DNA of 64,000 nucleotides from Macrostomum hystrix (taxonomy: Eukaryota; Animalia; Platyhelminthes). Position numbers and translations under genes: made by a program. The DNA lies in the NCBI GenBank assembly GCA_950097015.1, contig CATNEN010000033.1, positions 1,116,001 through 1,180,000 of the forward strand, in the 5' to 3' direction. This document shows, in pieces, positions 29,701 to 52,390 of the stretch (position 1 is its first letter; every line of letters starts with the position of its first letter). The notes beneath the pieces were generated by a model, which ran no database searches, was not told the DNA's origin, and worked only from the letters and a program-made list of their open reading frames with translations.

Positions 29701-32700
29701 ATCGGCACGGGCGAGCAAGGACTGGAAATAAAGAAAATAAAAGCAAATTCAAACACATATACAGTCCAGAGGGGTGCATTGTAAAACAGATTCTGTTATC
29801 TCACGGTGTATCGCAGCAGGATGCTAATGACTTGAATGAGGCTTGTGTCGTAGTTCCTGACAACGAACTGGTATTCCTCTTCAGTAAGACTGACGCCCGG
29901 TTTGTCAAGCAGGTGCATGTCGCTTGTGTTGGAGCCTGGAGAGGTAATGCACTTAAGAATTAGAGATTTTGGGTCACAGAGAATTAGAGATTTCGGGTCA
30001 CAGAGAATTAGAGATTTCGGGTCATAGAGAATTAGTGATTTCGGGTCACAGAGAATTAGAGATTTTGGGTCACAGAGAATTAGAGATTTTGGATCACAGA
30101 GAATTAGAGATTTCGGGTCACAGAGAATTAGAGATTTTGGGTCACAGAGAATTAGAGATTTTGGGTCACAGAGAATTAGAGATTTTGGGTCACAGAGAAT
30201 TAGAGATTTTGGGTCACAGAGAATTAGAGATTTTGGATCACAGAGAGTTAGTGATTTCGGGTCACAGAGAATTAGAGATTTTGGATCATAGAGAATTAGA
30301 GATTTCGGGTCACAGAGAATTAGAGATTTTGGATCACAGAGAATTAGAGATTTTGGATCATAGAGAATTAGAGATTTCGGGTCACAGAGAATTAGAGATT
30401 TTGGATCACAGAGAATTAGAGATTTTGGATCACAGAGAATTAGAGATTTCGGGTCACAGAGAATTAGAGATTTCGGATCATAGAGAGTTTGTCATTTGTC
30501 AATTAGTCCTTTGTCATCCAAAGCATAGCAAATGGGTAACAATTTTTATTCTTGAGCTTCAGTTAACCCAATTGTACTCGTAAATTGGGTAGCAGCAATA
30601 GTTTGAGTAGAACTCAGTAGAAATTAGAGTGGGTGTGGCCGGTCCACGGACTGAAAAGCTGTACACAGCCTTTGGAACCGCTACGCTCTTAACTGGGTTA
30701 GGTATGGTTTCTATCTATCTGGATATAGTGTTTTGTGGTGTCATGAAGACGGAATTATTTAGTCGCATATTACTATTGTTATCAGTAGTACTATTTTACA
30801 GGTACATTATAATACTTCATAGGTTACGCGCACCAGACGTGTTAGAAAGCTAATCTCTTGCTAGCAAGTACTCAGACTCGGCTAATCCTGTGGGGCTGAT
30901 TGGCAATGAGAGTTGACGTTAACTGGCACAGTTTGGCCACTATTGAATTAGCCAGCAATTTGAGAGCACAAGTCGGCCCAATTAAGTTCAGGAATTATGC
31001 AGGTCCTGAGTGCCAGCCGAACTCCTTCTAAACATTTTCGCATCCTTCAGCAATCGGAATTAGTAAACAACAGGCCGAACTGCAAATCCAAGGTCTCTGA
31101 CGTCCCTGGAGGATTTGCTCGGAGGCCATTAGGCGGGACTGAACAGAGTAGAAGGATTAAAAAACAGAACTCCTGCATAATTACAAATGATGCTAAGCAA
31201 AGTCAAGTTTTGCTTTTGTTGTTTTATTCAATCGATAAAAAACTGCATCAATTTGACGTCTGCAAATATTTCCAGTACAATGTAAACAATAAATGAGTTT
31301 TTTAGTGTCTTAAACTCAGCATTGAGATGATGGACGAGGAAAACTTGTTCCCGTAGTCTATGGCCTTCTCTAGTTCTGTTCCGCTACTCATTTCCATTGG
31401 CCATTTTAAATATTGGAGACTAAAATTATAAACTGATGCTCAATCAGCACATGCTTGAAGGTGGAGGATCACATGTGTCTCAGATGGCCAGATCAACAGC
31501 AGCGCCATCATCAGCTGCAGCCGCGGCAGGAGAAGGTAGCCAGGGTCGACAAAGTGAAGTCTACTCGGCTAGACAAAAAGAGCAGCGATAGCCGCGTGAG
31601 AAATAGCAACCAGGCACCAGCAGCAGCATCAGTCACACCCTTTTCCGTCCCGGAAAAGCTGCTTCGCTACTTCGCCCAATCTCAGTCCGCCGATTTTCTA
31701 GCTTCGCAGCAGCTGCAATGGCTGCCCAGCGGCGGCTTTGTCTGCGCCTACAGCAACGGCGGCGCGGATGTGCGCGAGTTCTTCGCCCACCTCGGCTGGC
31801 CGCACCTGCTGGGCGTAGCTAGCGGCAAAATGTGCGGCCACGCTGGGAAGCGAAATCAGCCGGGAATCTGCGGCCCAAGCAATCGTCTGTGGCATTGTCC
31901 CTGCGTGCAGAACGCCTTGTCAGCGATGCCGGACTACGCCTTCTTCTGGGGCAGTCTCTCGTCGACTGCCTTCGCACTGTGCATGGCCGCCAGCCAGCAG
32001 CGCAGCCGGCCGCTGGTGATGAACCGGATTCCCTGGGTGACGCTCATCAGCAACAAGAGCCAGCTGGCGCTAACCTGCATGGCTCACAAGCACAGCGGCT
32101 CCGCCCTCTGCCTACAGAGCCACATCCCGGCTACGTTCATTTTGGACAGGGACACAGACCGCAACTCGCTGCGCCTAATGGCCCGACGCCTACTGGAGAT
32201 GCACCCAGTGTGGATTGTCAAGCCGCAAAACTTCGCCAAAGGCGAGGGTATCCAGTTGGCTTTCCGGGAAGACGGTGAGACCGCCATGGTGCGCAGCCTG
32301 GCCAGCGACCGCTGGGGCTTCAGCAAGGTTGTGCAGTGCTACATGACTGAACCGATGCTGCTGGGCGGAAAAAAATTCGACCTGCGCGTCTTCCTGCTGC
32401 TCGTGACGACCGGCTCCGGGCTGCTGGCTTTCTACCACACCGGCTACGTCCGGCTGGCCCTCAACAACTTCACAGTCTGCGAAAAAAAACGCTTGGACAC
32501 ACACCTCACCAACCAGGCCGTGCAGGCAAAGCAGTTTAACTACGAGGCTAACAAGGAGGACACGATCTGGACGGTGGAGCAGATGAACAGGTACCTCAAC
32601 AGGCAGTCGACTAGCGAGTTCAGCAACGACTGGACGGTGCGGCAACTGCACCCGACTGTCAAGCTTCTGGTGGGCACGTTGGTGGATGCGCTGGTTCAGC

Positions 32701-35700
32701 GGGTGCAAAACGATCGCAGAAGCAGCGCCGCCAAGCAGCCGAAGCCGCAGTGGGAGCGCCACCCGTGCCGCAACACCTTCAGCTTGCTGGGTCTCGACGT
32801 GCTGATCGACGAAGTCGGCAAGCCGTGGCTCATCGAGGCCAACGCTGACCCAGCGCTGAGCCGGCAGACCCTGGCGTTGGAACGGCTGCTGCCGTCCGTG
32901 ACCTCTGAGGCCTTCGGTCTGGCCATGGAGATCATCTACAGGTGCCACGGCGCTGATCCTCAGGCGCCGGCGCCAGCAGCGCAGGATTTGGCATTCCTGC
33001 AGAATTTCCAGCCCCTTGGCTACTACCAAATTGTTGACAACTGACGGACGCCACCTTCGCAGTTGTTCGAATTTAATTTTTTAAAACTGAACTCGAAGCA
33101 GCAGCTTGGCTTTTATTTATTCCAGCTGCCAGCCTGTGATCTTTGGTTTTTTTGCAACGCCTGCTTTCCGTTTTTTCAGGAAAATATTTTTTCTTTGAGA
33201 TATACTTCATCCTAACAGCGAAACATAGTGCAGAAAATTATTGTTACACTGCTTTGTTGCTGGTAGAGATGGATATAGTGGGCCCGCAGACTGCAATCAC
33301 GAACCAACGTTCAACAGTCATCATTGACTACCCACTCACACAGCAATGTACCAGCTGTGTCGCTGAGGAAGCTATAAGAATGCTCGAAAACTTAAGGAAA
33401 CAATATGGCACCTAATAATATAACTAAAAATGACAAAAAACATCTGCCCCAATTTGGGACAGATGTGCAGCCGACATCACAAATTGTTATTGCGCGACGC
33501 ACTTGAAGTCTGTGGAACGGCTGTTCAGTCCATGGACAGGGTGAGGCCACACCCACCCTCAATTACCACAGCTGCGTGAACTGAAACAATCCAGAGTTAA
33601 TTAAAATGTCTTGCTAAAGGTAAAAAAATTGTTCAGTCGAGTCGGGAACCGAGCCCACAACCATGATGTACAGCCAGCGGCTATTGCAAAGCGCATCTAA
33701 AAGCTGCGTACAGCCGTTCAGTCCATGGACCCGAATTTCCATCCCATCCCAGCTAATTTTAGTACCGATTTAGCAGACAAATCCTAATTCAAACAGTTCA
33801 AGCAGGGACACTCACTCCACTGCAGTCCGCGGCACAAGAAGTGCAAGCTTTGATTCTTCTCCGACTGCACTTTCATTCTCGGCGGTATGAACAGGTCCTC
33901 GGACTTCAGGTCGGCCGGCAGCAGGATGAAGTACACCGGATTGCGCGACGGGTTCCACTTGGTGGTCAAGGCGGCTACTAGGGAGGAGGGCGAGTTCGCG
34001 CTGGACGTGCAGTGCCTGGACTGCTTGTTTCGGATGGGCAGCGGCGTGTACTGCTCCTGGAAACGGGGAGAGAACACACGGTGAAAAGTGCGGCCCAGAG
34101 TGGAAGGGAGGCTGTCATTAGTATGCCAGTCGGATGCGACCGCGAGACCACAGTCTCAGTTCAGCCTGGCTGAATTGTGGTCTGCTAATATGATTTTATT
34201 TCGAGCAACCCATATATATTTCTTTTTTCTGTATCTTCTAAACTATTAAAATCAATCCCATGAAAATCCAGAAGCCAGACTAAACTTTTCCTCTTCATCC
34301 GATGAGAAAACTTCCAGAATCATAAAGAATTGGCATCGTCGTGATATTCAACGATTCTCGTCAAAGGGTCTGCTGGCAAAAACAAACAAAAAAAATTTAT
34401 TTTTGTGCATACAATAGTTCATCATGTAACAATTTCGGCTATTATTGTTGATTATATTGTTATTTTTTTATTGAACCAATATGGATTCGCCAAAGAGGTT
34501 TATACACAGCAATGTCAATTTTATTTGTCACCAGGGACTTCGTCAAGAAACGTCGAAAATCTCAACTATGCTGAAGTCGGACGGCTTTGAAAGTTGATTA
34601 ATTGCAAAGAGTGGAAAAGTTTGATTTATATGGTGGAATTTCACGGAAATTGGTCATTGTGTTTGGGAGCAATCGTCAAGTAGGCAGTTGGTATTTGGCA
34701 CACCCCGTGGTCTTTCCCGGGGGGGGATAGCGTGGTCTTTTCCGGGGGGGAATAGCGTGGTCTTTTCCGGGGGGGAATAGCGTGGTCTTTCCAGGGGGGA
34801 ATAGCGTGGTCTTTCCAGGGGGGAATAGCGTGGTCTTTTCCGAGGGGGAATAGCGTGGTCTTTTCCGGGGGGGAATAGCGTGGTCTTTTCCGGGGGGGAA
34901 TAGCGTGGTCTTTTCCGGGGGGAATAGCGTGGTCTTTCCAGGGGGGGGAATAGCGTGGTCTTTTCCGGGGGGAATAGCGTGGTCTTTCCAGGGGGGGGAA
35001 TAGCGTGGTCTTTTCCGGGGGGAATAGCGTGGTCTTTTCCGGGGGGGGGGAATAGCGTGGTCTTTCCCGGGGGGAATAGCGTGGTCTTTTCCGGGGGGAA
35101 TAGCGTGGTCTTTCCAGGGGGGGAATAGCGTGGTCTTTTCCGGGGGGAATAGCGTGGTCTTTTCCGGGGGGGAATAGCGTGGTCTTTCCCGGGGGGAATA
35201 GCGTGGTCTTTCTACTGTTAAAAGTTTTTCCGAAAGAACGAAGTCCTTCCACTGAGCCAGATTTCAGGGGGTGAGTGGGTCAGCGGCTAATGCCGCCGCC
35301 TCACTTTCCAATGGTCGCTGGTTCGTTCTTCCCTCCAAGTCACGATTATTTCGGGGCTTAGTTGGAGGTTTGCGGAGTAGTGACTTGCGGAGATGCACCT
35401 TATTCTGTGCAACCAAAGCTAATTTAAAATAGCTTAACCCCTGCCTTCTGCATGCCTGCTTGTTTGTGTTTGTGTTTGTGCGTTGGGCCGGGTGTGGAGC
35501 GTTGTATGCGGGGTGGGGCGGGTGTGCACCAATGTGTACTCTCGTCCCTACCCTTCAGGCATCTAAGTCCTCCCCTGATTTGGTCAGCTCTGTGCGTGTG
35601 CGGGCCTGGGGTGATGCCGTTCCTGTGTTTGTGCGTCAAGTGCCCCAGGCCCCCTGCAAATAAGAGCCAGCCTTCTACCAAGCTTGACCCGAGGAGATCG

Positions 35701-38700
35701 CTTACATCCAGGTATTGGAAGTTGCCGAACGGCACCGGACTGTAGGTGGGATGGTCGGCCAGGTAGTCGAACCACTGGTCGAAGCCTTTCAGTTGCTCTG
35801 CAAAATCAGGTGTTGGAGATTTTTTGGCTAAAATATTATTGCAGGGACTGTGGGTCTGACAATTTCACGCTAAGATCCCAAAGCCTTCTCTCCTTGATTT
35901 GAGCTAGGGCACTTTGGTCTGAGCTACAATTGCTGCCCTGCGATACCAATCCCGCTCCTTACTCTTATCGATCACCGCGTTAATCTCCTCCGGGTAGAAG
36001 CCCAGCGGTCTGATGTCGCCGGAGTCCACCGGGAACTGACGGCCAGCCTGCAGGTCCTCCGGCTGCGCCACCTCTAGCAGTCCGTCGCGGATGCTTGTGA
36101 CGACGCCTGGGAGCCAGGTCTGTCCCACCCCAGTGCGGAACAGCAGAAGCATGCCCGGGTGGAAGTGCAGGGTTGACACGTGCTGCGGGAGAGCGACAGT
36201 TTGAGAATTTTTTTAAACAGTGGCTATCGATTTAATTGTAATTAACCAATCATACTAATCGATAGCACCCGCACCATTTTGGTCAGATGTGCAGCCGACA
36301 GCACAGCCGCAGCTAATGCGCGGCTCATCTGAAGGCTGCGTACGGCTGTTCAGTCCATGGACTGGTGAGATGCCACAACCACCATAATTTACCCCAGCTA
36401 ATGATATTATCCGTTTAACAGCTGGGTGAACTGAAGCAATGCAGAGTTAAGTATCTCTTTAATTGCTTCAGTGTAGTCAAGAATCGAACCACTAACCTTC
36501 AAGTCATGAGTCCGACACTCTACACACTAGGCTAGAAACTCCCCATTCTTAGTTACTTCTTCACTTCAAGTGCATTTTCTACGGTTGGAGCCACTATTAA
36601 AAGTCCGGAAGTTGATGAGGCTGTACTGTGGAGAATCGCTGATTGCCGTACAGGATTACCCCCTTGGTACTTCTATTATTAATTAACAAGATGCGGGAGA
36701 ACTTCTTAATAACGAATCGCAAGTCTCACAGCGAATTCCGGACAGCCCAGAATGAGCAGATTCCGTCCACCAAGATCGGCCGGCTGCTGATCATCTTCAG
36801 GCAGCGGGTAGCGGGCTCGCACGAACGCGTGGAGATGATCCGTGATGGGAGCGCGCAGCAGGACCTCGCCGTTGACCAGCACCTCCAGCTGGTTGAAATA
36901 GCACTGGGAAAAGAGAGAAACCAAATTGCAGGTGGATTGTTAGTCTCAGTAGTGCATCGGCTGTGAACTATTGTCAATAGAACAGAATTAAGCTGTTTCC
37001 ATGCCATTGGGAGCATCTTCAGCTGGGAGGCTGCAAGATTCATTTATCAAACAAACTGCTATGCCAGGATCAACACACCTGACAAGATTCGCTTGGCTAT
37101 TTCAGAAAATAGTTTTATATGATCATCTTGCGATGCGAAATGCTTGCTATAAACAATCCTAATCCCAGATTTGATAAAAAGGCCAAAGCTTACATCGTAA
37201 TGCTCATTGTAGACGCAGCTCTCGATGCTGAAGACCACAGTCGTGATCGGGTCATCAGCCCGCAGACTGTTGTCCTCTAGCTGTCTGGCAAACTCCCACT
37301 CGTGCACTGCGCCGGTCTTCAGTGTGAACTTCAGTCGGCCATCGCACAGCGTCACGCCGATGATGACGTCATCGTCTGCGCCGGAGGCATCGCTCAGGGC
37401 CAGAAAGACGGCCAGCTCGCAGCCAGGGCGCCGCAGAAGGCCGACCTCGAGCTTGTCGAAGCTGGCGTGCCTCATCGGCTGGCGCGACCGGAGCAGCGTC
37501 TCCAGCGTCACCGTGCGCTGGTCATCCGAGCGCTCGTCGTCGAATTTCGGACGTCTGGCGGCCACCAGCAGGTTTCCCCGCAGCGAGGCTGGGAGGCCGG
37601 CGACCACTTCGAAGGCCTTCGTGGCGAATGTCGGATAGACGCGGCAGAAGTGGCGCCACAACTTAGTCACCGTGTTCTTCCACAGAAAACAGTGCTCGCA
37701 GGAGAAGGAGTTCTGGTAGCGATCCATCCAGTCGTGTCGTGGAAACGGCGCGATTCGATACCACATGAAGCGCCAGTCAGAGTCAGTCATCTGCTTGACG
37801 CGGCACTTGGTGCAGCTCTTGTGGCTAGTTAGAGTGCGTCCCACTTCCGGCACCGAGAATGTGTTCTTCAGGCCCGAGTGGAAGCACTCACCGCGGCAGT
37901 AGACTCGCAGCTAGTTGGCCAGGGTATATCAGACACTGTCCACTTCCTTCCCGGACCCTTGCAGCCACCTCACTCCAAGGCCGACACTTCAGACCCTGTT
38001 CACTTCCTTCCCGGACCCTCGCAGCCACCTCACTCTAAGCCCGATACCTCACACCCTGCCCGTTTCCTTCTCTGACCCTCGCAGCCACCTCACTCCAAGC
38101 CCGATACCTCACACCCTGCCCGCGTCCTTCTCTGACCCTCGCAGCCACCTCACTCTAAGCCCGATACCTCACACCCTGCCCGTTTCCTTCTCTGACCCTC
38201 GCAGCCACCTCACTCCAAGCCCGATACCTCACACCCTGCCCGTTTCCTTCTCTGACCCTCGCAGCCACCTCACTCTAAGCCCGACATCCTATTTAAATAC
38301 GTCCTATTAAAAAAGTACAAAAAACTATGACGTCACCACGTCTTGCTTACCTTGTGATGCAGATAAGGGTACTCGGCAGCGACAGACTCCAGAATGGTTA
38401 GTAAGTCACTGAAGCAGGACCACATGTACTCTTTCAAGACGTCGCTGTTGGCTCCGGGTATCATTTCGTTAACACGACACTCGAAGTCGATTGAAGACGA
38501 AGCCAAAGCTGGAGAAGAAATCAAGAATTATTTGGCTGGAGTGGCTAGAGTGGCTGATTTGGCTGGAGTCTGGAGTGGCTGGTTTGGCTGGGGGGTGGCT
38601 GGTTTGGCTGGAGTGGCTGGGGTGGCTGGTTTGGCTGGAGTGGCTGGGGTGGCTGGAGTGGCTGGTTTGGCTGGAGTGGCTGATTTGGCTGAAGTGGCTG

Positions 38701-41700
38701 GTTTGGCTGGTTTGGCTGGTTTGGCTGGTTTTGCAAGAGTGGCTGGTTTGGCTGGGGTGGCTGGTTTGGCTGGGGTCGCTGGTTTTGCTGGGGTTGGATG
38801 GTTTTGCTGGAGTGGCTGGTTTGGCTGGGGTGGCTGGGGTTGCTGGTTTGGCTGGGTTTGCTGGTTTGGCTGGGGTGGCTGGTTTGGCTGGGGTTGCTGG
38901 TTTGGCTGGAGTGGCTGGTTTGGCTGGAGTGGCTGGTTTGGCTGAAGTGGCTGGTTTGGCTGGTTTTGCTGGTTTGGCTGGGGTGGCTGGTTTGGCTGGG
39001 GTTGGCTGGTTTGGCTGGGGTGGCTGGGGTTGCTGGTTTGGCTGGTTTAGCTGGGGTGGCTGGGGTTGCTGGTTTGGCTGGGGTTGGCTGGTTTGGCTGG
39101 GGTGGCTGGGGTTGCTGGTTTGGCTGGTTTAGCTGGGGTGGCTGGGGTTGCTGGTTTGGCTGGGGGAGAGCTATTTGATGGCTCCCAGCTGTCCGTTTAA
39201 TAAACTCCAGGCACCCGGGCGCTCACTGGAGTGCAGGCCGTAAGTGCAGAGGATGTCGCACACGCCCCGCTGCACGTGCATGCCGGTGCGCCACAGCTGC
39301 ACCACTCCGCTGGCTGTCGGGTTCTGCATGCAGGCCGCGGCGAATCTCGCCAGCAGGTTGGCCGGGAAGCCGACGCGGAATTTGACGGAGAAAAGCAGGC
39401 AGAGATCCCCAGCCGGGAAGGCCTCAGACTGCAGGTCGGGCATGTACAGGCTCTTGTGGTGCCGCATTGACAGCTTCTCCTCGCTCGCGCTCAGCCGGAG
39501 CGACACCCGGGGCTCCAGGCGGGACCAGAGGAAATAACGACTGCTGGAGGCCGCGGCTGCGTGCAGCAGGCGGGCGACCCGGCCGGCCTGGGTTGACTCG
39601 CGCACCGTGTCAGTGCGGCCAAGCAGCCCGAAGCGCAATAGGATGCGGCGCAGGGCCTCTGCCTGATTGGGGGAGAGGGGAATTCAGGGAGGTTAGAAAA
39701 TAGGGAAATGGGGATTTTAGAAAATAGGGAAATGGGGAGATTAGAAAATAGGGAAATGGGGAGATTAGAAAATAGGGAAATAGGGAGGTTAGAAAATAGG
39801 GAAATGGGGATGTTAGAAAATAGGGAAATGGGGATGTTAGAAAAAAGGGAAATGGGGAGATTAGAAAATAGGGAAATGGGGAGGTTAGAAAATAGGGAAA
39901 TGGGGATGTTAGAAAATAGGGAAATGGGGATGTTAGAAAAAAGGGAAATGGGGAGATTAGAAAATAGGGAAATGGGGAGGTTAGAAAATAGGGAAATGGG
40001 GATGTTAGAAAATAGGGAAATGGGGAGGTTAGAAAATAGGGAAATGGGGATGTTAGAAAATAGGGAAATGGGGATGTTAGAAAATAGGGAAATGGGGAGA
40101 TTAGAAAATAGGGAAATGGGGAGATAGCTAAATTGTGAGATTAGGAAATTGGGAGATTGGGAAATTGGGAGATTGGGAGATTGGGAAATTGGGAGATTGG
40201 GAAATTGGGAGATTGGGAAATCGGGATATTGGGAAATTAAGAGATTAGGAAATTGGGAGATTGGGAATCTTAATGTCTTAATTACGTTATGAAGACAAGA
40301 CTTGAAATCGACAAAAATTTATTGTCAGACAAGAATAAGTACAATATCACAAAGTATCACAGAACCTCGTCTTCTGTTGCCTCAGCGGCGATGAGCTCAT
40401 TGCGCAGCTCTTCCCCGCTGAGCGCCGGCACGGAGCGACCCAGCACCCAGCAGCTGTCACCATTGCGGTAGTCGGCAATGGCGTCGAGACGAGCCAGGCA
40501 GGCCATGAACCAGGCGGGGTCCAGCACCACTGGCTGGCCGGACACGTTAGGAAAGAAAAGCAGCTTGCCCTGAACAAAATCAAATTGCCCAGAGTTTTAC
40601 TACTTGTAGTAGAAATACGCATTTTTTGCTTTGGTTTTAAAAAAAACAAAACAGACTCACCATCTGGTGCAGCTTCTTGAGCAGCCCGACTGTTCGCCTG
40701 GTGTCCTCAGGCGGTAGACCCAGTTCAGTCATCAGCACCTTCAAAGGAAAGAGCCGACGCCACTGCTGCTGCTGCTGCTGCTGCTGAGAAGCCAAGAAGC
40801 CGGCTAGTCTGTCAGCTAGTCTCCAGTTGGCTTCGGTGAGTCGGCGGGTCTCCCACAGCTGCAGCGAGTTGGCGGCCGTCCTGGCCAGTTGAGTAACGTG
40901 ATGCGCAAGGCGATTTCCCTGTGAAAAAATAAAAGCTTGGGCATTTTAGTAGTCGACAGGTAAAGTCCGAGGCATGTATGAATGAAAGTCCGATCAAGAG
41001 GATAGCACTGGATGAATGATCGATTAAAAAACTTCTCCTATACATATCAAAACTCTTATCACAACGCCTCACTTCATGCTCTAACCTTCATCACACCCAC
41101 CTCACTCCATACTCTAACCCTCATCACACCCACCTCACTCCATACTCTAACCCTCATGACAGCCACCTCACTCCATACTCTAACCCTCATCACACCCACC
41201 TCACTCCATACTCTAACCCTCATCACAGCCACCTCACTCCATACTCAAACCCTCATCACACCCACCACACTCATTCTCTAAGCCGTATCTTATTCATCCA
41301 AACACATCCATACAGTTACCTCTTTCTCGGCCCTAGAAGATTCCGTGGCCGCAAAGCTGGACGGGTTAAGCTCCTGCTCGTGCTCCTTCACCAGCAGCAG
41401 GTACTTGATTACGGCATAGACGTAGAGCCACATGCAGTTGGTGATGTTGAACAACTTCTTCGCCTAGCGGGTGAAGTAGAATTGTGAATTCTATATGATA
41501 TCAAAGTTCAGGCAATGCAAACTGGCCCTAACAGCAAAGAAAAAAATGCTCACCTGCTCGCCAAAAGTTTCCCACTCTGGAACCAAGGCAATCAGGCTGG
41601 CTAACAGCTCGCTGTGTCTGCCGGTAAGAGACTCGGACTGGAAATGAGTACGCGGGCTTGGTGTGGCGGCAGGTTCGGCTGGGTGGCTGGTTTGGCTGGG

Positions 41701-44700
41701 GTGGCTGGTTTGGCTGGGGTGGCTGGGGTGGCTCGGGTGGCTGGGGTGGCTCGGGTGGCTGGTTTTGCTAGAGTGGCTGGGGTGGCTAGGGTGGCAGGTT
41801 TGGCTTGTTTTTGCTGGCGTGGCTAGTTTGGCTGCGGTGGCTGGTTTGGCTGGGGTGGCTGGTTTGGCTGGGGTGGCTGGGATGGCTGGTTTGGCTGGGG
41901 TGGCTGGGGTGGCTGGGGTGGCTGGGGTGGCTGGTTTGGCTTGTTTTTGCTGGGTGGCTGGTTTGGCTGGGGTGGCTGGGATGGCTGGTTTGGCTGGGGT
42001 GACTGGGGTGGCTGGGGTGGCTGGGGTGGCTGGGGTGGCTGGTTTGGCTGGGGTGGCTGGTTTGGCTGGGGTGGCTGGTTTGTCTGGGGTGGCTTGTTTG
42101 GCTGGGGTGGCTGGGATGGCTGGTTTGGCTGGGGTGACTGGGGTGGCTGGGGTGGCTGGGGTGGCTGGGGTGGCTGGGGTGGCTGGGGTGGCTGGTTTGG
42201 CTTGTTTTTGCTGGGTGGCTGGTTTGGCTGGGGTGGCTGGGATGGCTGGTTTGGCTGGGGTGGCTGGGGTGGCTGTTGTGGCTGGGGTGGCTGGGGTGGC
42301 TGGTTTGGCTTGTTTTTGCTGGGTAGCTGGTTTGGCTGGGGTGGCTGGGGTGGCTGTTGTGGCTGGGGTGGCTGGGGTGGCTGGTTTGGCTTGTTTTTGC
42401 TGGGTGGCTGGTTTGGCTGGGGTGGCTGGTTTGGCTGGGGTGGCTGGTTTGGCTGGGGTGGCTGGTTTGGCTTGTTTTTGCTGGGTGGCTGGTTTGGCTG
42501 GGGTGGCTGGTTTGGCTTGTTTTTGCTGGGTGGCTGGTTTGGCTGGGGTGGCTGGTTTGGCTGGGGTGGCTGGGGTGGCTGGGGTGGCTGGGGTGACTGG
42601 GGTGGCTGGGGTGGCTGGTTTGGCTGGGGTGGCTGGGGTGGCTGGGGTGGCTGGTTTGGCTTGTTTTTGCTGGGTGGCTGGTTTGGCTGGGGTGGCTGGT
42701 TTGGCTGGGGTGGCTGGGGTGGCTGGGATGGCTGGGGTGACTGGGGTGGCTGGGGTGGCTGGTTTGGCTGGGGTGGCTGGGGTGGCTGGGGTGGCTGGTT
42801 TGGCTTGTTTTTGGTTGGTTTGGCTGGTTTGGTTGGTTTGGGGTGGCGGGGATGGCTGGTTTGGCTGGGGTGGCTGGGGTGGCTGGGGTGGCTGGGGTGG
42901 CTGGGATGGCTGGGGTGGCTGGGGTGGCTGGGATGGCTGGTTTGACTGGGGTGGCTGGGGTGGCTGGTTTGGCTGGGGTGGCTGGGGTGGCTGGGGTGAC
43001 TGGGGTGGCTGGGGTGGCTGGTTTGGCTGGGGTGGCTGGGGTGGCTGGGGTGGCTGGGGTGGCTGGGGTGGCTGGGGTGGCTGGGGTGGCTGTTGTGGCT
43101 GGGGTGGCTGGGGTGGCTGGTTTGGCTTGTTTTTGCTGGGTGGCTGGTTTGGCTGGGGTGGCTGGGATGGCTGGTTTGGCTGGGGTGGCTGGGGTGGCTG
43201 GGGTGGCTGGGGTGGCTGGTTTGGCTTGTTTTTGCTGGGTGGCTGGTTTGGCTGGGGTGGCTGGGGTGGCTGGTTTGGCTGGGGTGACTGGGGTGGCTGG
43301 GGTGGCTGGTTTGGCTGGGGTGGCTGGGGTGGCTGGGGTGGCTGGGGTGGCTGGTTTGGCTGGGGTGGCTGGGGTGGCTGGGGTGGCTGGGGTGGCTGGG
43401 GTGGCTGGGGTGGCTGGTTTGGCTGGGGTGGCTGGGGTGGCTGGGGTGACTGGGGTGGCTGGGGTGGCTGGTTTGGCTGGGGTGGCTGGGGTGGCTGGGG
43501 TGGCTGGTTTGGCTTGTTTTTGCTGGGTGGCTGGTTTGGCTGGGGTGACTGGGGTGGCTGGGGTGGCTGGTTTGGCTGGGGTGGCTGGTGGCGGATTTGG
43601 CAGTGGTGATGGTTTGGAGAGGTGGATAGACACACAGGGCTCACAATATACTGCATGTCCTTGAAGCGCAGCAGGAAGCGAGTCTCAGAAACAAGCTTTT
43701 TTACGGTAGGCCAGGCGTCGTCCTCAGTGAAGGGAATGTCGAAGATCAGCATGACGCATTTCATTGTTGTCAGGACAATCGTTGGCGGCACGGACAATGA
43801 ACGCAGCTAAAGTAAATTAATTGTTATGCTATGAGCTTGTTCTGAAATCTGGTCACCAGTAAAGGCTTTGCTTCAGCACTAGCTTACCTCTGAGAAGTCC
43901 GCCTTTGTGCAGCGATCTAGGGCATCGATGGCATACATCTACACGGATGAGTAAGAAGTAGCATTGATTTTTAGTGACGTAGAAAAATACTTGATTTGTG
44001 CAATGAGCACAGTGATCGCAGGGAATTCGTGACTACTCACATAGTCGTGCTCAGCCCAGTATTGCATCTGAGCCTGCACATTGGAATCTATTTTTACTTC
44101 GCGTAGAACAGCTTCGAACACCTGTAATCAATTGAGCCAATTGTTATTAATCAATCACTCCATCCTCTAACCAAGACACACCTCACTCAATCCTCGGACC
44201 CACAACACACCCACCTCACTCTCTTTTCTAACCTGAAACCACCAATCTCACTCAATTCTTTGACCCCAAGACACCCACCTCAATTCATCCAATACATCCC
44301 AAGACCACCACCATTCGCTGACTCACAGCACACCCACCCCACTATAACCTCTAACCCCGACGCACCCCACCTCAATCGTTTTCTAACCCCCAACACACCC
44401 ACCTTACTCCTTTTTCTAACCCCCAACACACCCACCTACTTTAATGTTTTGACCCCTAGACACCCACCTCACTCCATCCGCTGACTCACAACACACCCAC
44501 CTCACTACATCCTCTAACCCCCAACACACCCACCTACTTTAATGTTTTGACCCCTAGACACCCACCTCACTCCATCCGCTGACTCACAACACACCCACCT
44601 CACTACATCCTCTAACCCCCAACACACCCACCCTACTCCATTTTCTATTGATCTTTTCAACCGTTTGCATTTCAAAATCGGCACTGACCCAGTCCTGCTT

Positions 44701-47040
44701 GAATCCGCCCACCGGCACAGCAATCAAACTAATTGGGAAGTGCGTGATATCGGCGCACTGAATCGACTGCACGTAGCGCCACTGGTGTGGAAAATCTTTG
44801 TCGTAGCAGCTGAAGATCGGCAGGGCGGTTAATTGTACTTGATTGTATGTTTTTAATTAATAATTGATGATTGCCTGGAGATCGGCTCGTGCAACCAACC
44901 TATTTAGATGCTCCTTCTCCAGGTGTTCTTTCATGTTCTCAACCTGATCTTTGAGCATATTCTCCAAGTCGGATTTCAGCGAGGCCACATTCTCGACGCC
45001 CTTCTCGCTGCTGACGGTGGCCACGAGGAGGAGCGGCGCTTCAAACACCTGCGATTAAAGTCCAGTAACCCGTGTGCATTCTTCTCCCATTCTAATGACT
45101 TATCTTTGTTTGGCCCTTATTAGGGCCGTTTTGATTGTTACTTGTCTTCTGTGCTTCTTTAGTATGGCGGATTTTAAAATAATATACAGCTGCCCCTTAT
45201 TGGCCCGGGAAATATATGTGATCTCTTACTGTCGGGTGTCTAACTTTCTAGTTCTGATTTGAGAGTTCAAACTCTGAGTTTTCTGCTTGTGCCCAGCGAC
45301 TAAAGCTTCGGACCTGCTGGCTCCCGATTGCTTCAGTACACTTAGCTGTAGACTGGGTTCCAATATTAGCGCGGGGCTGCTTCGCCAGTCCATGGACTGC
45401 AAAGCTGTACACAGCCTTTGGAAGCATCGCGCAATAGCTGCGTTTTCAATATCACCGTTTTCACTCAGACTTTCACGAGAAAGAAAGTAATTATGAGCAG
45501 ACTTGTCACGTGACAGTTCAGATTTGATTGGACGGCCTGGCTGGCCACTCACCGCTCCCCGCACAGCGTCAATCATTCGCATTATCTCTAGCTGGGGATT
45601 TTCAGTGCGCTCCGCGTCAATCACCAGCACAAAGCCGGCGGTGTTGGACATGAACAGCGAGCTGTACACCTGCAGGGCCATTGTGTAAGAGAACCCGTTA
45701 AAAGTTTGAAGAGTTAAGCAGAGTTCAGGAAGCAATTAAAGAGCTAGTGATCGGCTCACCAAATCGGCACGCATTTCGAAAACATTCATATCCAGATTGC
45801 CGAAAATGCCTGAGAGCACCTGAAAAGACGGCTGCTGCTGCTGCGTTACCTTGGCAGCTGACTTCGATGACGGCCTTGAAGACGACGCCGAAGAGATGGC
45901 TGAAAGCGCCATAGACGCGATGCTGACTGGTACAGCGGGGTCGCAGATGACCGCCAGCTTCACAGGGAGGTTTGCCACGGTCGACACGGCACCTGACAAC
46001 ACAGGTGAATTTGGATGAAGGGGCTGGATGGAATGCCAAACAGTGGGGACTCTCGGCAGCTGTTTTCACTCTTTTTTTCGTGTATCGATCGGATGCCGGG
46101 AGTTGAAAGCCTCTGTGATTTATAATTTGTACGCAACTTGGCGATTTCGAAAGGTCAGGCTAGTGCATGAGTAATGATTATTTTCATTTCCGAGGGTTTT
46201 TTAGCTTTTAGCGAGGAGACAATTCCACTGACCAATGATCATACACAGGCACACTCACACAGGGTGTGTACATCTGCCCTGACTTTCACTTTCACTTTTC
46301 CCTGCGTTTTGAAGGCTGGCCCTCAAAGGCGTACACCACTGACACCACTGGGCTGGCGAAAGGGCCGCAGTCGGGAACTGTTTCTCACCGTCGATAAACT
46401 GGAAGGCCGGGTCGAACTGAACAGCAAAGTTCAGCTGCCTGGAGCCGCAGTGGGTCAGCTGGGTGCCCAGCATGCTGACGGACTGCAGGTCGCGGCAGTG
46501 CTTGCCCAGGTAGTGCAAGCTCCGCTCAGTCAGCTGCTCGCAGCCGTCCAGACTCAGCAGCAGGAGGCGCGGGAAGGCGCGGGCCAGGTGAGCCACGCCA
46601 TCGTCGCGAAGGTGCCGACAGCCGACGCAGGAGACTCGGGTAACTCTAGCTCGAGCCTCATCCGGCACAGCTGTCTCCAGCAGGTGGAAAACCTCGTCTG
46701 TCAGCTGCTCGACGCCATCGAACTCCAGGTGAAACTCAACGCCCTTGTCGGCAAACCAGGTTGGCAGCTTTGCCTTGTGAATGGTGATGAGAGTTTCGTT
46801 GGGTATTTCGTTGGGCACTTACATGCTGCAACGACGCATCACAAGCTTCATACTTATGCAGGGCTTCACAAAGACACACAATGAAGCCAAATGTATTTCA
46901 TATGCGTGTAATCCGTTCAAAGAACCGAATTATGACTTAAATGACGGGAAGCTTACCAGCAGCTTGCGAAGCGGAATTTGCTCCTGAACCTCCAGCTCAT
47001 TGTAGAAATTTTCAAATGTCAATCGTTTCACAGCGGACAT
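4270..47040 (-). CDS. Giant tandem Roco protein, 38 exons, ~3030 aa: LRR-pseudoRoc-MTBD-like-COR-linker-LRR/EF-Roc-COR-TIR-TIR-Cterm
   Basis: Hand-built exons (minus): 47040-46957, 46773-46389, 45992-45760, 45669-45553, 45048-44900, 44809-44689, 44121-44041, 43938-43888, 43806-43645, 41637-41554, 41463-41320, 40918-40661, 40569-40366, 39662-39227, 38508-38351, 37910-37194, 36903-36730, 36182-35963, 35797-35706, 34056-33816, 29935-29805, 29721-29656, 27690-26534, 25321-25156, 25072-24667, 19771-19665, 19581-19503, 19150-19004, 17250-16892, 16291-16144, 16043-15926, 14806-14623, 13805-13472, 9619-9362, 8563-8453, 6195-6004, 5777-5670, 5175-4270. Donor and acceptor phases match at every junction; there is one extra base within exon 23. 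Confidence 0.8.
5317..5565 (-). mobile_element. tRNA-derived SINE, family A
   Basis: Minus-strand head GGGGGTGAGTGGCAGAGCG...GCTCGATTCC; homologous to 8694-8960, 22279-22460 and 46245-46330. Confidence 0.8.
5925..6380. repeat. Two short arrays flanking Roco exon 36: 24-bp x3 (5925-5995) and 16-bp GGAACAATGGAAGATT (~6280-6375)
   Basis: Direct reading. Confidence 0.8.
6004..9619 (-). CDS. Roco exons 34-36: second TIR domain (TIR_2/SARM1-like)
   Basis: [50 protein letters not shown]. Confidence 0.9.
8694..8960 (-). mobile_element. tRNA-derived SINE, family A
   Basis: Head GGGGGTCAGTAGCAGAGCGG...GCCCGATTCC; body shared with the 5317 copy. Confidence 0.8.
10525..11853 (+). CDS. Intronless class A (rhodopsin-like) peptide-type GPCR, nested antisense in Roco intron 33 (9620-13471)
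   Basis: Seven hydrophobic segments; N-terminal sequons (NGS, NDS). [13 protein letters not shown] at the DRY position, APRLFEF after TM4, ICELP in TM6, DSFTNFIIY in TM7. FMRFamide-receptor/Srw-like by recall. Confidence 0.9.
   Translation: MLAHVAVNGSCLNDSNSSAGPAGGAANVYLYIACVLSYLNALTNGFSLVVFVLDKKNVIMGRLLLLLSLSETVLNIGFAANLTVMLSVMADAGRQTYDSTLRPQILTCTFFLSFVVANAFIMVRNWCLVMIAGSRCEVVSNPFSTRSGQLFSHRRSQVCYAVTLILSLLVCAPRLFEFTWTICEFPPAAGEDNSTGTVYSLTTATHHILDKNPSYSHYKTLLVFPLQTIAPIFLISGLSLVIIFILRRRRLLQQNSGGGAGGGGGGGNVNSGAGGGVSAGGGSGSRSQDAATKTVMILMFSFIICELPTFLFFILNQTIFASMRGFTEIRMHTTFLANIMLSADSFTNFIIYSSTSNTFRETVRRMFHLPDSRRGRSNNYNYYNNHLHNNNYTMLSRDANAMRRAEAAAAAAAAAAAAAAATAVNSDDPALVPLNWQHLSSE
13472..14806 (-). 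CDS. Roco exons 32-33: first (degenerate) TIR domain
   Basis: DVTLIFCS...[12 protein letters not shown]...[22 protein letters not shown]...KPFVL gives a TIR_2-like layout; His sits where Glu is usual. Confidence 0.7.
15315..15600. repeat. 23-bp minisatellite (GTTGAGCGCTGGTTGAACTAATG)
   Basis: Direct reading. Confidence 0.95.
15926..19771 (-). CDS. Roco exons 26-31: second COR domain
   Basis: [68 protein letters not shown]: classical COR motifs. Confidence 0.9.
16310..16630. repeat. 23-bp minisatellite (AAAATGGTAGGATATTAAAGTAC)
   Basis: Direct reading; degrades toward 16860. Confidence 0.95.
17285..17620. repeat. 24-bp minisatellite (CCAGGTGGAAAACCAGTTAAATGT)
   Basis: Direct reading. Confidence 0.95.
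18427..18998 (+). mobile_element. tRNA-derived SINE, family B, copy 1
   Basis: Head GGGGGCGAGTGGGTCAGCGG (A box) ... AGTTCGATTC (B box); (AGAT)n tail; flanking CTCACCTT duplication; near-identical to 56868-57460. Confidence 0.88.
19155..19430. repeat. Degenerate 9-bp AGTAGACAA array
   Basis: Direct reading. Confidence 0.75.
19840..21240. repeat. ~1.4-kb purine-rich satellite (GAGTGAGGGAAGGA variants)
   Basis: Direct reading. Confidence 0.97.
22279..22460 (-). mobile_element. SINE family A, 5'-truncated copy
   Basis: Shares TGACTCCT..GCACAC..CAGGCA, CTGACTTTCTCATCGTCAGGCAGTGTACAC and TAAATTGCACGACAAGCCC; head absent. Confidence 0.75.
22965..23375. repeat. TGTC-rich 18/22-bp minisatellite (TGTCTGTGCTGGGTGTC)
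   Basis: Direct reading. Confidence 0.95.
24235..24640. repeat. 20-bp minisatellite (CCGCTTACCCTGATGACACC), ~20 copies
   Basis: Direct reading. Confidence 0.97.
24667..25321 (-). CDS. Roco exons 24-25: intact Roc GTPase domain
   Basis: [15 protein letters not shown] (G1), TDGIDI (G2), WDFAGQ (G3), [19 protein letters not shown] (G4). Confidence 0.95.
25345..25765. repeat. 22-bp minisatellite (TGCACATTCTACATCAACTCGA), ~19 copies
   Basis: Direct reading. Confidence 0.97.
26280..26430. repeat. 9-10-bp GGAAACCT(G) array
   Basis: Direct reading. Confidence 0.9.
26534..27690 (-). CDS. Roco exon 23: typical bacterial/SDS22-like LRR array interrupted by a Gly-rich loop and an EF-hand; carries a +1 frameshift
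   Basis: LxxLxLxxNxIxxLP repeats ([38 protein letters not shown]). EF loop [12 protein letters not shown]. The exon is 1157 nt, one base longer than the flanking phases require. Confidence 0.85.
27725..28840. repeat. 30-bp minisatellite (CATCACCTGTCCTTCAGTGAGCCCTCCTTC), ~37 copies with higher-order variants
   Basis: Direct reading. Confidence 0.97.
29170..29520. repeat. 35-bp pyrimidine-rich minisatellite
   Basis: CCTGTCTCTAATCCCTCTCCTTCTTATCTAATCTT, period 35. Confidence 0.93.
29656..36903 (-). CDS. Roco exons 17-22: linker between the two Roco modules, including a Tudor/Agenet-like beta-barrel
   Basis: [31 protein letters not shown] in exon 36182-35963. Phase-consistent splicing from 36903 through 29656, including across the TTLL-containing intron (TGG A|gtgagt ... 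ctccag|GC). Confidence 0.65.
29955..30485. repeat. 24-bp minisatellite (CACAGAGAATTAGAGATTTTGGGT), ~22 copies
   Basis: Direct reading. Confidence 0.97.
31473..33044 (+). CDS. Tubulin-tyrosine-ligase-like ATP-grasp enzyme, most like polyglycylase TTLL10; nested antisense in Roco intron 20 (29936-33815)
   Basis: [84 protein letters not shown]. First in-frame ATG at 31473; an unrecognised 5' exon cannot be excluded. Confidence 0.85.
   Translation: MCLRWPDQQQRHHQLQPRQEKVARVDKVKSTRLDKKSSDSRVRNSNQAPAAASVTPFSVPEKLLRYFAQSQSADFLASQQLQWLPSGGFVCAYSNGGADVREFFAHLGWPHLLGVASGKMCGHAGKRNQPGICGPSNRLWHCPCVQNALSAMPDYAFFWGSLSSTAFALCMAASQQRSRPLVMNRIPWVTLISNKSQLALTCMAHKHSGSALCLQSHIPATFILDRDTDRNSLRLMARRLLEMHPVWIVKPQNFAKGEGIQLAFREDGETAMVRSLASDRWGFSKVVQCYMTEPMLLGGKKFDLRVFLLLVTTGSGLLAFYHTGYVRLALNNFTVCEKKRLDTHLTNQAVQAKQFNYEANKEDTIWTVEQMNRYLNRQSTSEFSNDWTVRQLHPTVKLLVGTLVDALVQRVQNDRRSSAAKQPKPQWERHPCRNTFSLLGLDVLIDEVGKPWLIEANADPALSRQTLALERLLPSVTSEAFGLAMEIIYRCHGADPQAPAPAAQDLAFLQNFQPLGYYQIVDN
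33440..33730 (-). mobile_element. SINE family C copy
   Basis: Homologous to 36270-36535 (CAGATGTGCAGCCGACA, CGGCTGTTCAGTCCATGGAC, AGCTG.GTGAACTGAA.CAAT); degenerate tRNA-like head near 33640-33690. Confidence 0.65.
34200..34705. mobile_element. MITE-like element, diverged copy 3
   Basis: Shares GGCATCGTCG.GATATTCA, GTCGGACGGCTTTGAAAG and TATGGTGGAATTTC..GAAA..GGTCATT...GTAGGCAG with the other copies. Confidence 0.45.
34705..35215. repeat. ~24-27-bp minisatellite GnAATAGCGTGGTCTTTTCC with variable G runs
   Basis: Direct reading. Confidence 0.95.
35267..35663 (+). mobile_element. tRNA-derived SINE, family B, diverged shorter copy 3
   Basis: Same head (GGGGGTGAGTGGGTCAGCGGCTAA) and 3' end (GTGCCCC..GCCCCCTGCAAATA); possible GAGCCAG duplication. 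Confidence 0.8.
36270..36535 (-). mobile_element. SINE family C copy with tRNA-like head
   Basis: Minus strand TAGCCTAGTGTGTAGAG...GGTTCGATTC (A/B boxes); related fragments at ~30640-30680, ~45385-45430 and ~57800-57945. Confidence 0.7.
37194..40918 (-). CDS. Roco exons 12-16: first COR domain and following Cys-rich/beta region
   Basis: [14 protein letters not shown]...[15 protein letters not shown] (COR-A signature). [15 protein letters not shown]...LWRTGMHV (COR-B). Then CxxxC, CxxC and CxxC Cys pairs. Confidence 0.75.
37920..38285. repeat. 60-bp minisatellite, ~6 copies
   Basis: CCCGATACCTCACACCCTGCCCG...CACTC(C/T)AAG recurs at the same position on successive 60-nt lines. Confidence 0.95.
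38535..39165. repeat. 9-bp GGCTGG(GGT/TTT/AGT) satellite
   Basis: Direct reading; same family as 41675-43590. Confidence 0.95.
39690..40265. repeat. 24-bp GAAAATAGGGAAATGGGG(A/G)(G/T)(A/G)TTA array followed by 9-bp GGGA(A/G)ATTG array
   Basis: Direct reading. Confidence 0.95.
41080..41275. repeat. 33-bp minisatellite (CACACCCACCTCACTCCATACTCTAACCCTCAT)
   Basis: Direct reading. Confidence 0.9.
41320..43938 (-). CDS. Roco exons 8-11: dynein heavy-chain stalk-tip / microtubule-binding-domain-like segment
   Basis: Spliced sequence [37 protein letters not shown]...[22 protein letters not shown]...[21 protein letters not shown] follows the dynein MTBD pattern ALDxLxxxDIxE(L/V)(K/R)SMxxPPxxVxxVMEAVCIL...WxxAKKLLxDxxFL...LCxWVxAMxxY (pattern recalled, not searched). 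Confidence 0.75.
41675..43590. repeat. ~1.9-kb 9-bp GGCTGGGGT satellite with higher-order GGTTTGGCTTGTTTTTGCTGGGT blocks
   Basis: Direct reading; fills Roco intron 9. Confidence 0.97.
44170..44640. repeat. Degenerate C/A-rich repeat (CACACCCACCTCACT / CTAACCCCCAA units)
   Basis: Direct reading. Confidence 0.8.
44689..45992 (-). CDS. Roco exons 3-6: degenerate first Roc (pseudo-GTPase) domain
   Basis: Roc-like order of elements: [15 protein letters not shown] (G1 position), [26 protein letters not shown] (G3/switch II), PLLLVATV (G4). Lacks GxxxxGK[ST] and DxxG. Confidence 0.65.
46245..46330 (-). mobile_element. SINE family A fragment
   Basis: CAGGCACACTCACACAGGGTGTGTACATCTGCCCTGACTTTC...GGCCCTCAAAGGCGTA. 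Confidence 0.6.
46389..47040 (-). CDS. Roco exons 1-2: start ([28 protein letters not shown]) and FBXL/AMN1-type Cys-containing LRRs
   Basis: ATG at 47040, 84-nt exon ending CTG|gtaagc. LRR units [40 protein letters not shown]. The exon 2 acceptor is uncertain. Confidence 0.7.
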
Positions 47041-50160: not shown

Positions 50161-52390
50161 TTAATGTTGTTTTTGCAACACGCAGCAGCCGTCCTCTGGC
50201 AGGCGTTCCTTCGTGCCAGCCAGTCGGTCGTAGAAGGCAACCCGCCCCGGAAAAGCGCTGCTGAGGTTAAAGAGGCCCATTCGCTCGGAGACCGAAAATT
50301 CATAGCCCAGGTGCAGGAACCGGTGCACTCCCAGGCTATTAGACTCGCTGCTGACTTTATTCAATTTCCAGCCTTTCGCTGCCAGCTGCCGGCATCCGAG
50401 GCGTCGCCAACGGTCCATCTCGACCTCCTCCGGCGTGGTGGGCGTCGTCTCGTCGGTTTCTCGGTTCACTGTCTCAAAACGGATCAAGTTTCTTTAGTTA
50501 GCTAAATTGGTGCATAAATTTTCACCTTTGGCCCATTGGTATTTAGCCTTGCACTTTCAAAGTCTTCAGCGCTTTCCCTACGCTGTCTTTCTGAATCATC
50601 CTAGTTTGAGACTGAGTGAATTGGTTCTGCCCTACTCAGTCTCCATCGAGAATATACATGAGCTATACAACCTAAACTTAAGAGAAACCAATCCGTCTGC
50701 ATGTCTGCTTCCTGAGACGATGAACCCAATCAGTCTTTACCGGATGCAGCCAGTTTAGAAGACTTACACTCGCGAATGCACAACATGCGCCAGTTCTTAT
50801 TCGGGTCCATCCACGCAGAGAACATTTCGAATGGCAGCAGCGTCACGAGCGGCCGACGACCGGCCAGCGAGTACTCGATGTACTTTCGAGTGAGCAGCTG
50901 CGGACCCGTGCTGTGCACAATGGATTCTACTCCGCTCCATTCTGGCAGCGAATCCAGCATCAGGCGGAAGAACGGATGTCGCGGAGGCGCCGCCATGACT
51001 GAGTTCATGGCCAAGAACGCCCGGCCCCAAACAATGCGAGTCTGCTCCGGCCTCTCCTGGTCCAGCAGGGCAGCCGACTCACGCCAGGCTTTCGCAAGCA
51101 AAGGGGCCAATGGCCGTCGGCAGTGGACGTCCATGTCCAGATAGACACCTGCCCAGCAGTTTGTTTACAGGTGAATCTCTAAATAATGACACACTAAACT
51201 GATCTGTCTCTGGCCCAGTTTAAAGTTCTGAGGTAATCATTTGAGACAAAAATCTAGCAGCCGAAACTGCTTGAAAATAATGTGTTTCTACTGGCTCGTG
51301 CAGGAGAATAAAAGTTGACCATCTCTACGCCCAACTGCTCAAGTCTGATGACTTTCTCGATTGAAGGTACACTCAGCTCAGGCTAAAGTTGCTTACAGAT
51401 GCCCATGCCACTTACCACCGTACAGGTACAAAGCTGCGTATCTAATCAGATCTGAGCGCTGCAGTTCATTCCGGTAGCCTCGGTAGATTGGCAGGAGGTT
51501 GGGGAAATGGTCACTGAGCAGGCGCTCAGCGTCCGAGTTGCGCCACAGTACATAGGCGAAGTCCGGATTGACCGTCAAGCAGCTGTTGATGTAGGGCCTG
51601 TAGTTCTCGTAGACCATCTCGCTAGAGAAGGTCTGGTGCAGGAGTTGGGAATATTTCCCACCCGGAAGCGCATTTTGCAAACCCGTTCTGCTATCGGACC
51701 GTTGCAGAACGATGAATAGAAGGAGAATAAGCTGCGGGCAAGGAGTTTCACTGTTAGGTAATGAACCATTGAAACATGTATGCTCTGCGCGTTTTAAAAG
51801 TACATAATGAAACTTGTCTCATTCAGATCAATTCAAAATGGTCAATTGTTTGATCAATTCGATGGGACATTGTGTTCTCTCTAGTAAAGAGCTCAAGTGC
51901 TAACACTTGTGTTGGAGTAGAAACTGGAAAATGAACCATCTACATTTCCACAGAAGCTGGCTTGTCAGCCATTAGCCACGGGGTACTTCAAATCACTGCC
52001 TTCACGATAGCTTCCGAAAACGAATGACCGATTTTCGGGAAAGTCCACCATATTGATAAAAAATTCCATCCTTTAGGATTAACTAACTTTCAAAGCCGTC
52101 CGACGTCGGCATCGTCGAGACATTCAGCGATTCCTGTCGAAGACCCTGGTGACAAGGACAACTAACATTCCTCTGTATCCATACGAATGGAGCGGAAAAG
52201 TTTTGTTTGAGTTATGGACTTACATGGCGATTGGTTTCATATTTTGGGAGATACAAAAGGAAATGTGGGTATTTGAAATAGCCCCATGGCTCGCAAGACT
52301 CACGGCGAGGACAGTCAGCAAGGCAACGGACCACCTTGCTGATCGTCGAGATAGTTTGCAGAAGCTGCGATAAGTTGCCGACGCAGACAT
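50161..52390 (-). CDS. GT32-family (Gly_transf_sug, DXD) glycosyltransferase A, type II membrane, 4 exons, 363 aa
   Basis: Exons 52390-52304, 51731-51416, 51148-50768, 50468-50161, phase-consistent. The TM WSVALLTVLA|LILLLFIVL spans junction 1. Motifs LLHQ, RSDLIRYAALYLYGGVYLDMDV, NSVMAAPPRHPFF, STGPQLLT, HRFLHLGY. Confidence 0.9.
51979..52285. mobile_element. MITE-like element, copy 1
   Basis: Imperfect TIRs GGGGTACTTCAAAT / ATTTGAAATAGCCCC; inverted homologue at 54570-54908 and diverged copy at ~34200-34705. Confidence 0.6.

Follow-up and report, generated by a model that had tools for sequence, protein, structure and literature searches.

To our knowledge, the microtubule-binding domain (MTBD) of dynein is regarded as exclusive to the tips of dynein stalks, and its affinity for microtubules is thought to depend on the stalk together with the motor. 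The helices of this domain that face tubulin are H1, H3 and H6. Nor do we know of any dedicated microtubule-binding module or dynein-like domain in LRRK2, the Roc-COR protein that comes closest, in a broad sense, to the case described here. One report describes the kinase and GTPase half of LRRK2 as bound to microtubules (PMC9758056), and fusions of the MTBD to seryl-tRNA synthetase (PDB 3ERR, 6RZA, 6RZB; Lacey et al. 2019, PMC6629372) showed that an MTBD can bind microtubules alone once the register of the stalk is fixed. The MTBD-tubulin interface obtained in the latter work agrees with earlier mutagenesis, and two universally conserved stalk prolines were used there to delimit the domain (PMC6629372). 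Here we analyze 64,000 nucleotides of the genome of the flatworm Macrostomum hystrix (contig CATNEN010000033.1, positions 1,116,001 to 1,180,000 of the forward strand), a stretch hereafter called the window, in which four phase-0 exons of the minus strand, numbered 8 to 11 and together referred to as the module, encode, as judged from sequence comparison, a domain that derives from a dynein heavy-chain MTBD.

Sequence relationship to dynein heavy chains

Translation of the minus strand yields the peptide that a first-pass annotation of the window had placed at 41320–43938 and had read as a dynein MTBD. For the homology searches, the spliced window peptide was replaced by its homologue from Macrostomum lignano, a predicted protein of 1371 residues (P0001). 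A phmmer search with residues 1–230 of P0001 against 177,635 PDB sequences puts three DNAH6 chains on top, with E-values of 3.5e-9, 4.6e-8 and 7.7e-7. The best of them aligns residues 32–185 of P0001 with residues 2780–2927 of DNAH6, that is about 150 residues leading from H1 through H6 into the stalk helix CC2, with a bias of 0.1. The next dozen or so matches are other dynein heavy chains (inner-arm, I1, outer-arm and trypanosomatid), each aligned at its own MTBD with E-values between 2e-4 and 4e-3; matches to PDB sequences other than dyneins are few and all have E-values above 0.6. Even exon 9 of the window, searched alone against the PDB, retrieves just three sequences at E ≤ 10, all of them DNAH6 at the MTBD (E 0.32). 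The Pfam family MT (PF12777) is the sole family matched by the module region of P0001 (E 0.0034, 16.9 bits); the match begins at profile position 87, and just 23 residues lie ahead of it. In a language-model search, 92 of the 100 nearest Atlas clusters belong to PF12777, with top scores of 0.90. The dynein homology proposed from the letters alone is thereby borne out by both kinds of search.

The alignment with DNAH6 also recovers the motifs that had been picked out by eye, among them the PP turn and the entry into CC2. Motifs common to the module and DNAH6 are A-L-D, K-A-D, E-x-R, the PP turn, W-P-T-x-K, F-L, C-M-W and V-K-E, and nearly all positions that are identical in P0001 and DNAH6 are, by eye, unchanged in the window. 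Scanned against Pfam one at a time, the exons are too short to give a match to MT, Roc or COR. Exon 9 by itself was of no help in the Atlas, and a PDB profile search with an alignment as query scored below the single sequence, misplaced fragment ends having removed columns. Among solved structures, the one to which the module aligns most closely is the single-headed inner-arm dynein DNAH6. According to the same alignments it retains helices H1–H6, with the stalk reduced to stubs, about 30 residues in length on the CC1 side.

No AAA family is found in P0001, in the upstream exons or in the precomputed Pfam list of P0004, a second M. lignano model introduced below, in agreement with the absence of an AAA ring already noted in the first pass. 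The gene does not show the six AAA+ modules, the linker and the tail that surround the stalk in a dynein heavy chain. The ATG of the first exon lies at about 47040, with an in-frame stop eight codons 5′ of it in the window translation, which places the module about 370 codons from the N-terminus and leaves no upstream room for a dynein tail or an AAA ring. Given the homology to the MTBD and the absence of an AAA ring, the module is a dynein-derived MTBD inside a non-dynein protein.

When exon 9 was compared with 1.84 billion representative proteins, the only real matches were two M. lignano models, P0001 and a messy fragment, P0002. In its annotation P0001 is an incomplete "hypothetical protein", lying where the M. 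lignano contig NIVC01003779.1 ends, and tblastn maps it colinearly on the window from 44124 to 27106. The module peptide of the window aligns with that of P0001 at 82% identity and without a single gap, and the exon lengths (51, 162, 84 and 144 nt) as well as the phases are identical at the two loci. The comparison gives a dN of 0.13 and a dS of about 2–3, which is saturated, hence a dN/dS of about 0.05. These values indicate that the two copies are old and that strong purifying selection acts on the module of each; the copies may be orthologues of two species or old paralogues. Homologue searches with the module alone yielded no relatives, those with residues 1–230 of P0001 yielded only P0001 itself, and no relative came up in a scan of metagenomes. 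In the protein and metagenome scans run here, the module is so far confined to Macrostomum. M. lignano is amenable to RNA interference and transgenesis.

Transcript structure and host protein

The RNA evidence consists of assembled contigs from four runs of one study, placed on window positions 43600–46900. The joints 44041/43938 and 43888/43806 are present in all four runs, and further joints tie exons 8 and 9 to four upstream exons with a G-domain-like pattern and to an exon with leucine-rich repeats (LRRs) (Table 1). Individual contigs, the longest of 1585 nt, join the LRR exon and the G-like exons to exons 8 and 9 and to sequence beyond them in the four runs, which makes the module part of one transcript with these upstream exons. 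In every run a loose end occurs at 43645, whose 30 letters are those of window positions 41608–41637; it thus marks the joint of exon 9 with exon 10 over an intron of 2007 nt. The contigs extend at least 306 nt past exon 9, as compared with 228 nt for exons 10 and 11 together. Junctions 10/11 and 11/12 are based on canonical splice sites, on this run of at least 306 nt and on the identical exon structure in M. lignano. In the minus-strand translation, exons 8–11 all have lengths divisible by three, AG acceptors and GT donors, and the splicing in phase 0 proposed for them is in accordance with these lengths and sites and with the RNA joints. Beyond the donor at 44041, where the exon ends with WAEHDY, 17 more codons remain open down to 43990 (VSSHEF…AQIK); they are intronic in all four RNA runs.

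The module had been described as lying between a pseudo-Roc and a COR domain, of which only the second flank has support from searches. The stretch directly after the module (residues 225–540 of P0001) has COR-A/COR-B clusters as its Atlas neighbours, with scores of 0.95–0.97, and a weak Pfam match to COR-A (E 0.0028); it gave zero sequence matches in the PDB, and BLASTP detected no likeness between it and the COR encoded further downstream in the window. Neighbours and profile together assign the domain immediately downstream of the module to COR. As for the exons upstream, neither Pfam nor the PDB yielded a Roc or Ras match. By eye, they display alternating strand-like and helix-like segments, as in an alpha/beta, G-domain-like fold, with degenerate P-loop and NKxD positions. 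Roc is the usual domain preceding COR, and the label pseudo-Roc is a guess drawn from this pattern and from the position.

Further along the same strand, Pfam identifies LRRs with an EF-hand-like stretch, a Roc domain (PF08477) at 24589–25376 (E 1.5e-16), COR-A and COR-B at 16078–17304 (E about 1e-9 each) and two TIR domains at 13442–13834 and 9329–9643 (TIR_2, E 5e-5 and 2e-6). The order that characterizes Roco proteins, Roc followed by COR, is found in this downstream unit only. The second M. lignano model, P0004, has the composition LRR-Roc-COR-TIR and covers window positions 29948 down to 8456; it overlaps P0001 by 316 residues at 92%. This overlap and the colinear mapping make one gene of about 2,500 codons likely, and the gene with the module very probably continues, as its sequence reads, into LRR-Roc-COR-TIR-TIR. 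The Roco-TIR host of the first-pass annotation is thus supported by Pfam for its Roc, COR and two TIR domains and by the overlapping models for their belonging to the same gene.

Two observations concern the host protein itself. In UniRef, P0004 bears the name "non-specific serine/threonine protein kinase", and a kinase family is absent from its precomputed Pfam domains; the name has probably been transferred from LRRK-type Roco proteins. Between the CC2-like helix and the COR-A-like domain lies a glutamine run (window positions 40740–40770, minus strand), eight residues long here and six in M. lignano, where S/Q flank it; it may form a flexible hinge.

Origin and possible function of the module

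We lean, with slightly better than even confidence, towards a dynein-derived MTBD that was captured by exon shuffling and now acts as a passive, motor-free microtubule anchor for the LRR-Roc-COR-TIR protein. The capture would have taken place in the macrostomid lineage, from the gene of an axonemal dynein of the DNAH6 type; exons 8–11 are all symmetric phase-0 exons, which is the pattern expected for exon shuffling. The captured domain would hold the host protein of about 2,500 residues on microtubules, perhaps on ciliary doublets because the donor class is axonemal, and the contact would be made through the usual H1/H3/H6 face. Anchoring of this kind would proceed without the control by helix sliding that the full stalk and the AAA ring supply. 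The shortness of the CC1 side, about 30 residues, makes the kind of helix-sliding control known from dynein unlikely. A more elaborate form of anchoring, in which the MTBD would be a regulated anchor of a TIR-bearing Roco protein on microtubules or ciliary doublets and the flanking G-like domain and COR would replace the stalk and the AAA ring in setting the affinity, appears doubtful to us. If true, the protein would act in innate signalling or cell death of an animal and would read or guard the cytoskeleton via a borrowed part of a motor.

Basic residues matching those of DNAH6 are kept in H1 (the Lys of K-A-D and the Arg of E-x-R) and in H3 (the Lys after W-P-T). A number of observations nevertheless weigh against the passive anchor. 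The module core has a net charge of -4 in the window and -3 in M. lignano, as compared with about +5, by hand count, for the aligned stretch of DNAH6. Relative to DNAH6, the Lys ahead of the PP turn is lost, and the HMMER alignment sets a Tyr opposite the Arg of H6 (WVRAM). The position of the CC2 Pro of DNAH6 (VKEVEP) is occupied by R in P0001 and by Q in the window, a Pro following four residues later, and on the CC1 side, itself a short stub, no Pro is seen by eye in the 26 residues before H1. The pair of conserved stalk prolines and the long antiparallel coiled coil are, in other words, not found in the module. To these points are added the Pfam score, which lies under the gathering cut-off of 24 bits, so that the profile check proposed in the first-pass annotation, when run on P0001, singles out the MT family without attaining its threshold, and the predicted structures. 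AlphaFold models built from two-sequence alignments are of low confidence (pLDDT 42 for residues 1–235 and 60 for the core), since the alignment held only two real sequences, and VIA-align applied to them gives Z-scores of 3.2–3.7 for dynein MTBDs versus 4.1 for unrelated Bak/Bax bundles. At so shallow an alignment depth, these scores do not speak against the MTBD fold.

The same low-confidence models do contain helices in the expected order and number. With both of them, the first 19–32 Foldseek matches are all dynein stalks or MTBDs (among them 5AYH, 6RZA, 6L4P, 3ERR, 8I3J, 6KJN and many in-situ dyneins), yet with TM-scores of 0.3–0.5 and E-values of at least 0.005; as Foldseek also uses the amino-acid letters, this ranking is not independent of the sequence evidence. 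We consider it evenly balanced whether the module binds microtubules.

The alternative that survives best keeps the descent from dynein and dispenses with microtubule binding: the domain would have been reused, for instance, as a seat for one of the protein's own LRR domains or as a rigid spacer between the G-like domain and COR, a possibility to be taken seriously although we hold it with less than even confidence. The LRR protein LC1 sits on the MTBD of outer-arm gamma dynein. A core that is acidic where the DNAH6 stretch is basic is consistent with such a reuse, as are the basic residues missing at some positions and the changed CC2 Pro position; one of the top structural matches of the low-confidence models is the LC1-MTBD complex (6l4p_B), and LRR domains flank the module on both sides in the same protein. 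The strong purifying selection can likewise be claimed for it, as it indicates a function, not which one. However, the core-packing residues and several interface residues common with DNAH6 are kept in both copies, the partner is hypothetical, and the analogy with LC1 is merely a resemblance.

The two remaining explanations have very little left to them. A chance or convergent likeness of a small helical domain, without shared descent with dynein, could invoke the Pfam score below gathering, the empty per-exon scans and the structural Z-scores at background level, but it is close to refuted by a top E-value of 3.5e-9 with negligible bias over an alignment in H1-to-CC2 order, by further matches that are nearly all dynein heavy chains at the same relative position and by language-model neighbours in PF12777. 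It is just as improbable that the exons belong to a separate small gene or dynein fragment and were joined to the host by misassembly or by read-through contigs: the RNA support does consist of short assembled contigs of one study, which show neither junction 10/11 nor junction 11/12 nor any of the downstream half, but in the four runs single contigs lead from the LRR exon to exons 8 and 9 and beyond, the reading frame is open across all joints, and the exons follow one another in the same order in M. lignano, an independent assembly, with an annotated protein that extends from the module into COR and LRR.

Gene map, introns and neighbouring genes

Table 1. Parts of the module-bearing gene in transcript order, with window positions and the evidence for each.
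Feature	Window position	Strand	Evidence and remarks
Exon 1, coding part	46958..47040	-	ATG at about 47040; peptide MSAVKRL...RKLL; GT donor; RNA loose end at 46774 = window 46958-46983
Exon with RNI-type LRRs	46386..46774	-	RNA contigs; weak Pfam match LRR_At5g56370, E 1.6e-4
Four G-like exons, "pseudo-Roc" of the first-pass annotation (45757-45989, 45550-45666, 44900-45045, 44687-44809)	44687..45989	-	Joints in RNA contigs
Exon 7, helix of about 26 residues just ahead of the module, CC1-like stub	44041..44119	-	RNA joints 44119/44687 and 44041/43938; predicted helical; outside the dynein alignments
Exon 8 (17 aa), MTBD helix H1	43888..43938	-	RNA joints on both sides; aligns with DNAH6, ALDSLDKADISE
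Exon 9 (54 aa), end of H1, PP turn, H2-H4 (W-P-T-x-K and RFL motifs)	43645..43806	-	RNA contigs; 85% identical to P0001
Intron between exons 9 and 10, 2007 nt	41638..43644	-	Spliced out in RNA contigs
Exon 10 (28 aa), MTBD H4-H5 region	41554..41637	-	RNA loose end at 43645 = 41608-41637; aligns with DNAH6
Exon 11 (48 aa), H6 (CMW motif) and first turns of CC2 (VKEHE), then helix break (NPSS)	41320..41463	-	AG/GT sites; same 144-nt exon in the M. lignano contig (L001); aligns with DNAH6, CMWVRAMDLYSRVVKEVEP
Exon 12, long helix HMMER-aligned to dynein CC2, poly-Q run, COR-A-like start	40661..40918	-	tblastn of P0001, splice sites; alignment with 8glv_Fm reaches query residue 219
Rest of gene: COR-like, about 600 aa without assignment, LRR, EF-hand-like, LRR, Roc, COR-A/B, TIR, TIR	8456..40596	-	Colinear mapping of P0001 and P0004; Pfam

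The intron between exons 9 and 10 consists almost wholly of a 9-bp tandem repeat, GGCTGGGGT, in about 212 copies at 41677–43588 (Tandem Repeats Finder). Across this intron the minus strand is open in all three frames, including the frame of exons 9 and 10, with an open frame of 771 codons; retention of the intron would insert about 670 residues rich in Pro, Gln, Thr and Ala within the MTBD-like domain. In the M. lignano copy the same intron measures 72 nt. Related short-period repeats are present in other introns, at 38545–39222 and 39700–40320, with long open frames that are Pro/Gln/Thr-rich or Phe/Pro/Ser-rich, and the introns of this gene seem to be a preferred site of satellite expansion.

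On the opposite strand, within an intron of the MTBD-bearing gene, lies an intronless gene of the TTL (tubulin ligase-like) family (E 3.7e-34, window positions 31455–33044, plus strand). A TTL-family gene is nested in the same manner in the M. lignano contig (L001, 10242–11873, minus strand), so that in both copies a tubulin-modifying enzyme is found at the same locus as a tubulin-binding-like domain. Two pairs of open frames that resemble each other lie upstream of the Roco gene, at 50733–51818 and 62281–63205 on the minus strand, with motifs such as SEMVYENY and YLDMD in common; judged by eye, they are similar to DXD-type sugar transferases and may be tandem paralogues.

Comparison with known systems

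A literature search turned up no MTBD described outside dynein heavy chains, nor one in a Roco or TIR protein; as its coverage was incomplete, this is absence of evidence only. The case would accordingly read as a known domain in an unreported host architecture. With the MTBD of DNAH6 (PDB 9fqr_Xz, 9d2f_T, 8j07_g5; PF12777), the module has in common the order of elements from H1 to CC2, a series of motifs and a significant sequence similarity. Unlike DNAH6, the flatworm protein lacks the AAA ring, the linker and the tail, its stalk is cut down to stubs, the position of the CC2 Pro is changed, four extra residues are inserted in the H2–H3 loop and the core is acidic rather than basic. A conserved and expressed copy outside a motor would show that the MTBD can be moved by exon shuffling, like the CH, CAP-Gly and TOG modules.

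On the side of the host, the nearest relatives of the stretch after the module are the multidomain COR proteins of invertebrates (COR with Death, CARD or TIR, in Atlas clusters rich in molluscs). PF12777 occurs in none of the clusters among those listed, in contrast to the flatworm protein. LRRK2, a human Roco protein, may be considered the closest natural analogue in the broad sense announced above: it combines Roc and COR with LRRs and can decorate microtubules, and LRR, Roc and COR are also present in the flatworm gene, whereas the flatworm protein is without a Pfam kinase domain and ends in two TIR domains. For the Roco field, microtubule binding by the module, if true, would represent a second, independent route of a Roc-COR protein to microtubules, and through the TIR output a signalling or NAD-cleaving domain would then be linked to the cytoskeleton or to cilia.

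The closest functional analogues would be the engineered synthetase fusions, in which a motor-free MTBD is likewise carried by a foreign protein via short helices. Those constructs were designed with 12 stalk heptads, a chosen register and an MTBD delimited by its prolines, whereas the flanks of the flatworm module are natural, short and unequal, and its binding is putative. Seen next to them, the module would be the natural counterpart of the engineered MTBD fusions and would provide a test of how the domain acts without helix-sliding control.

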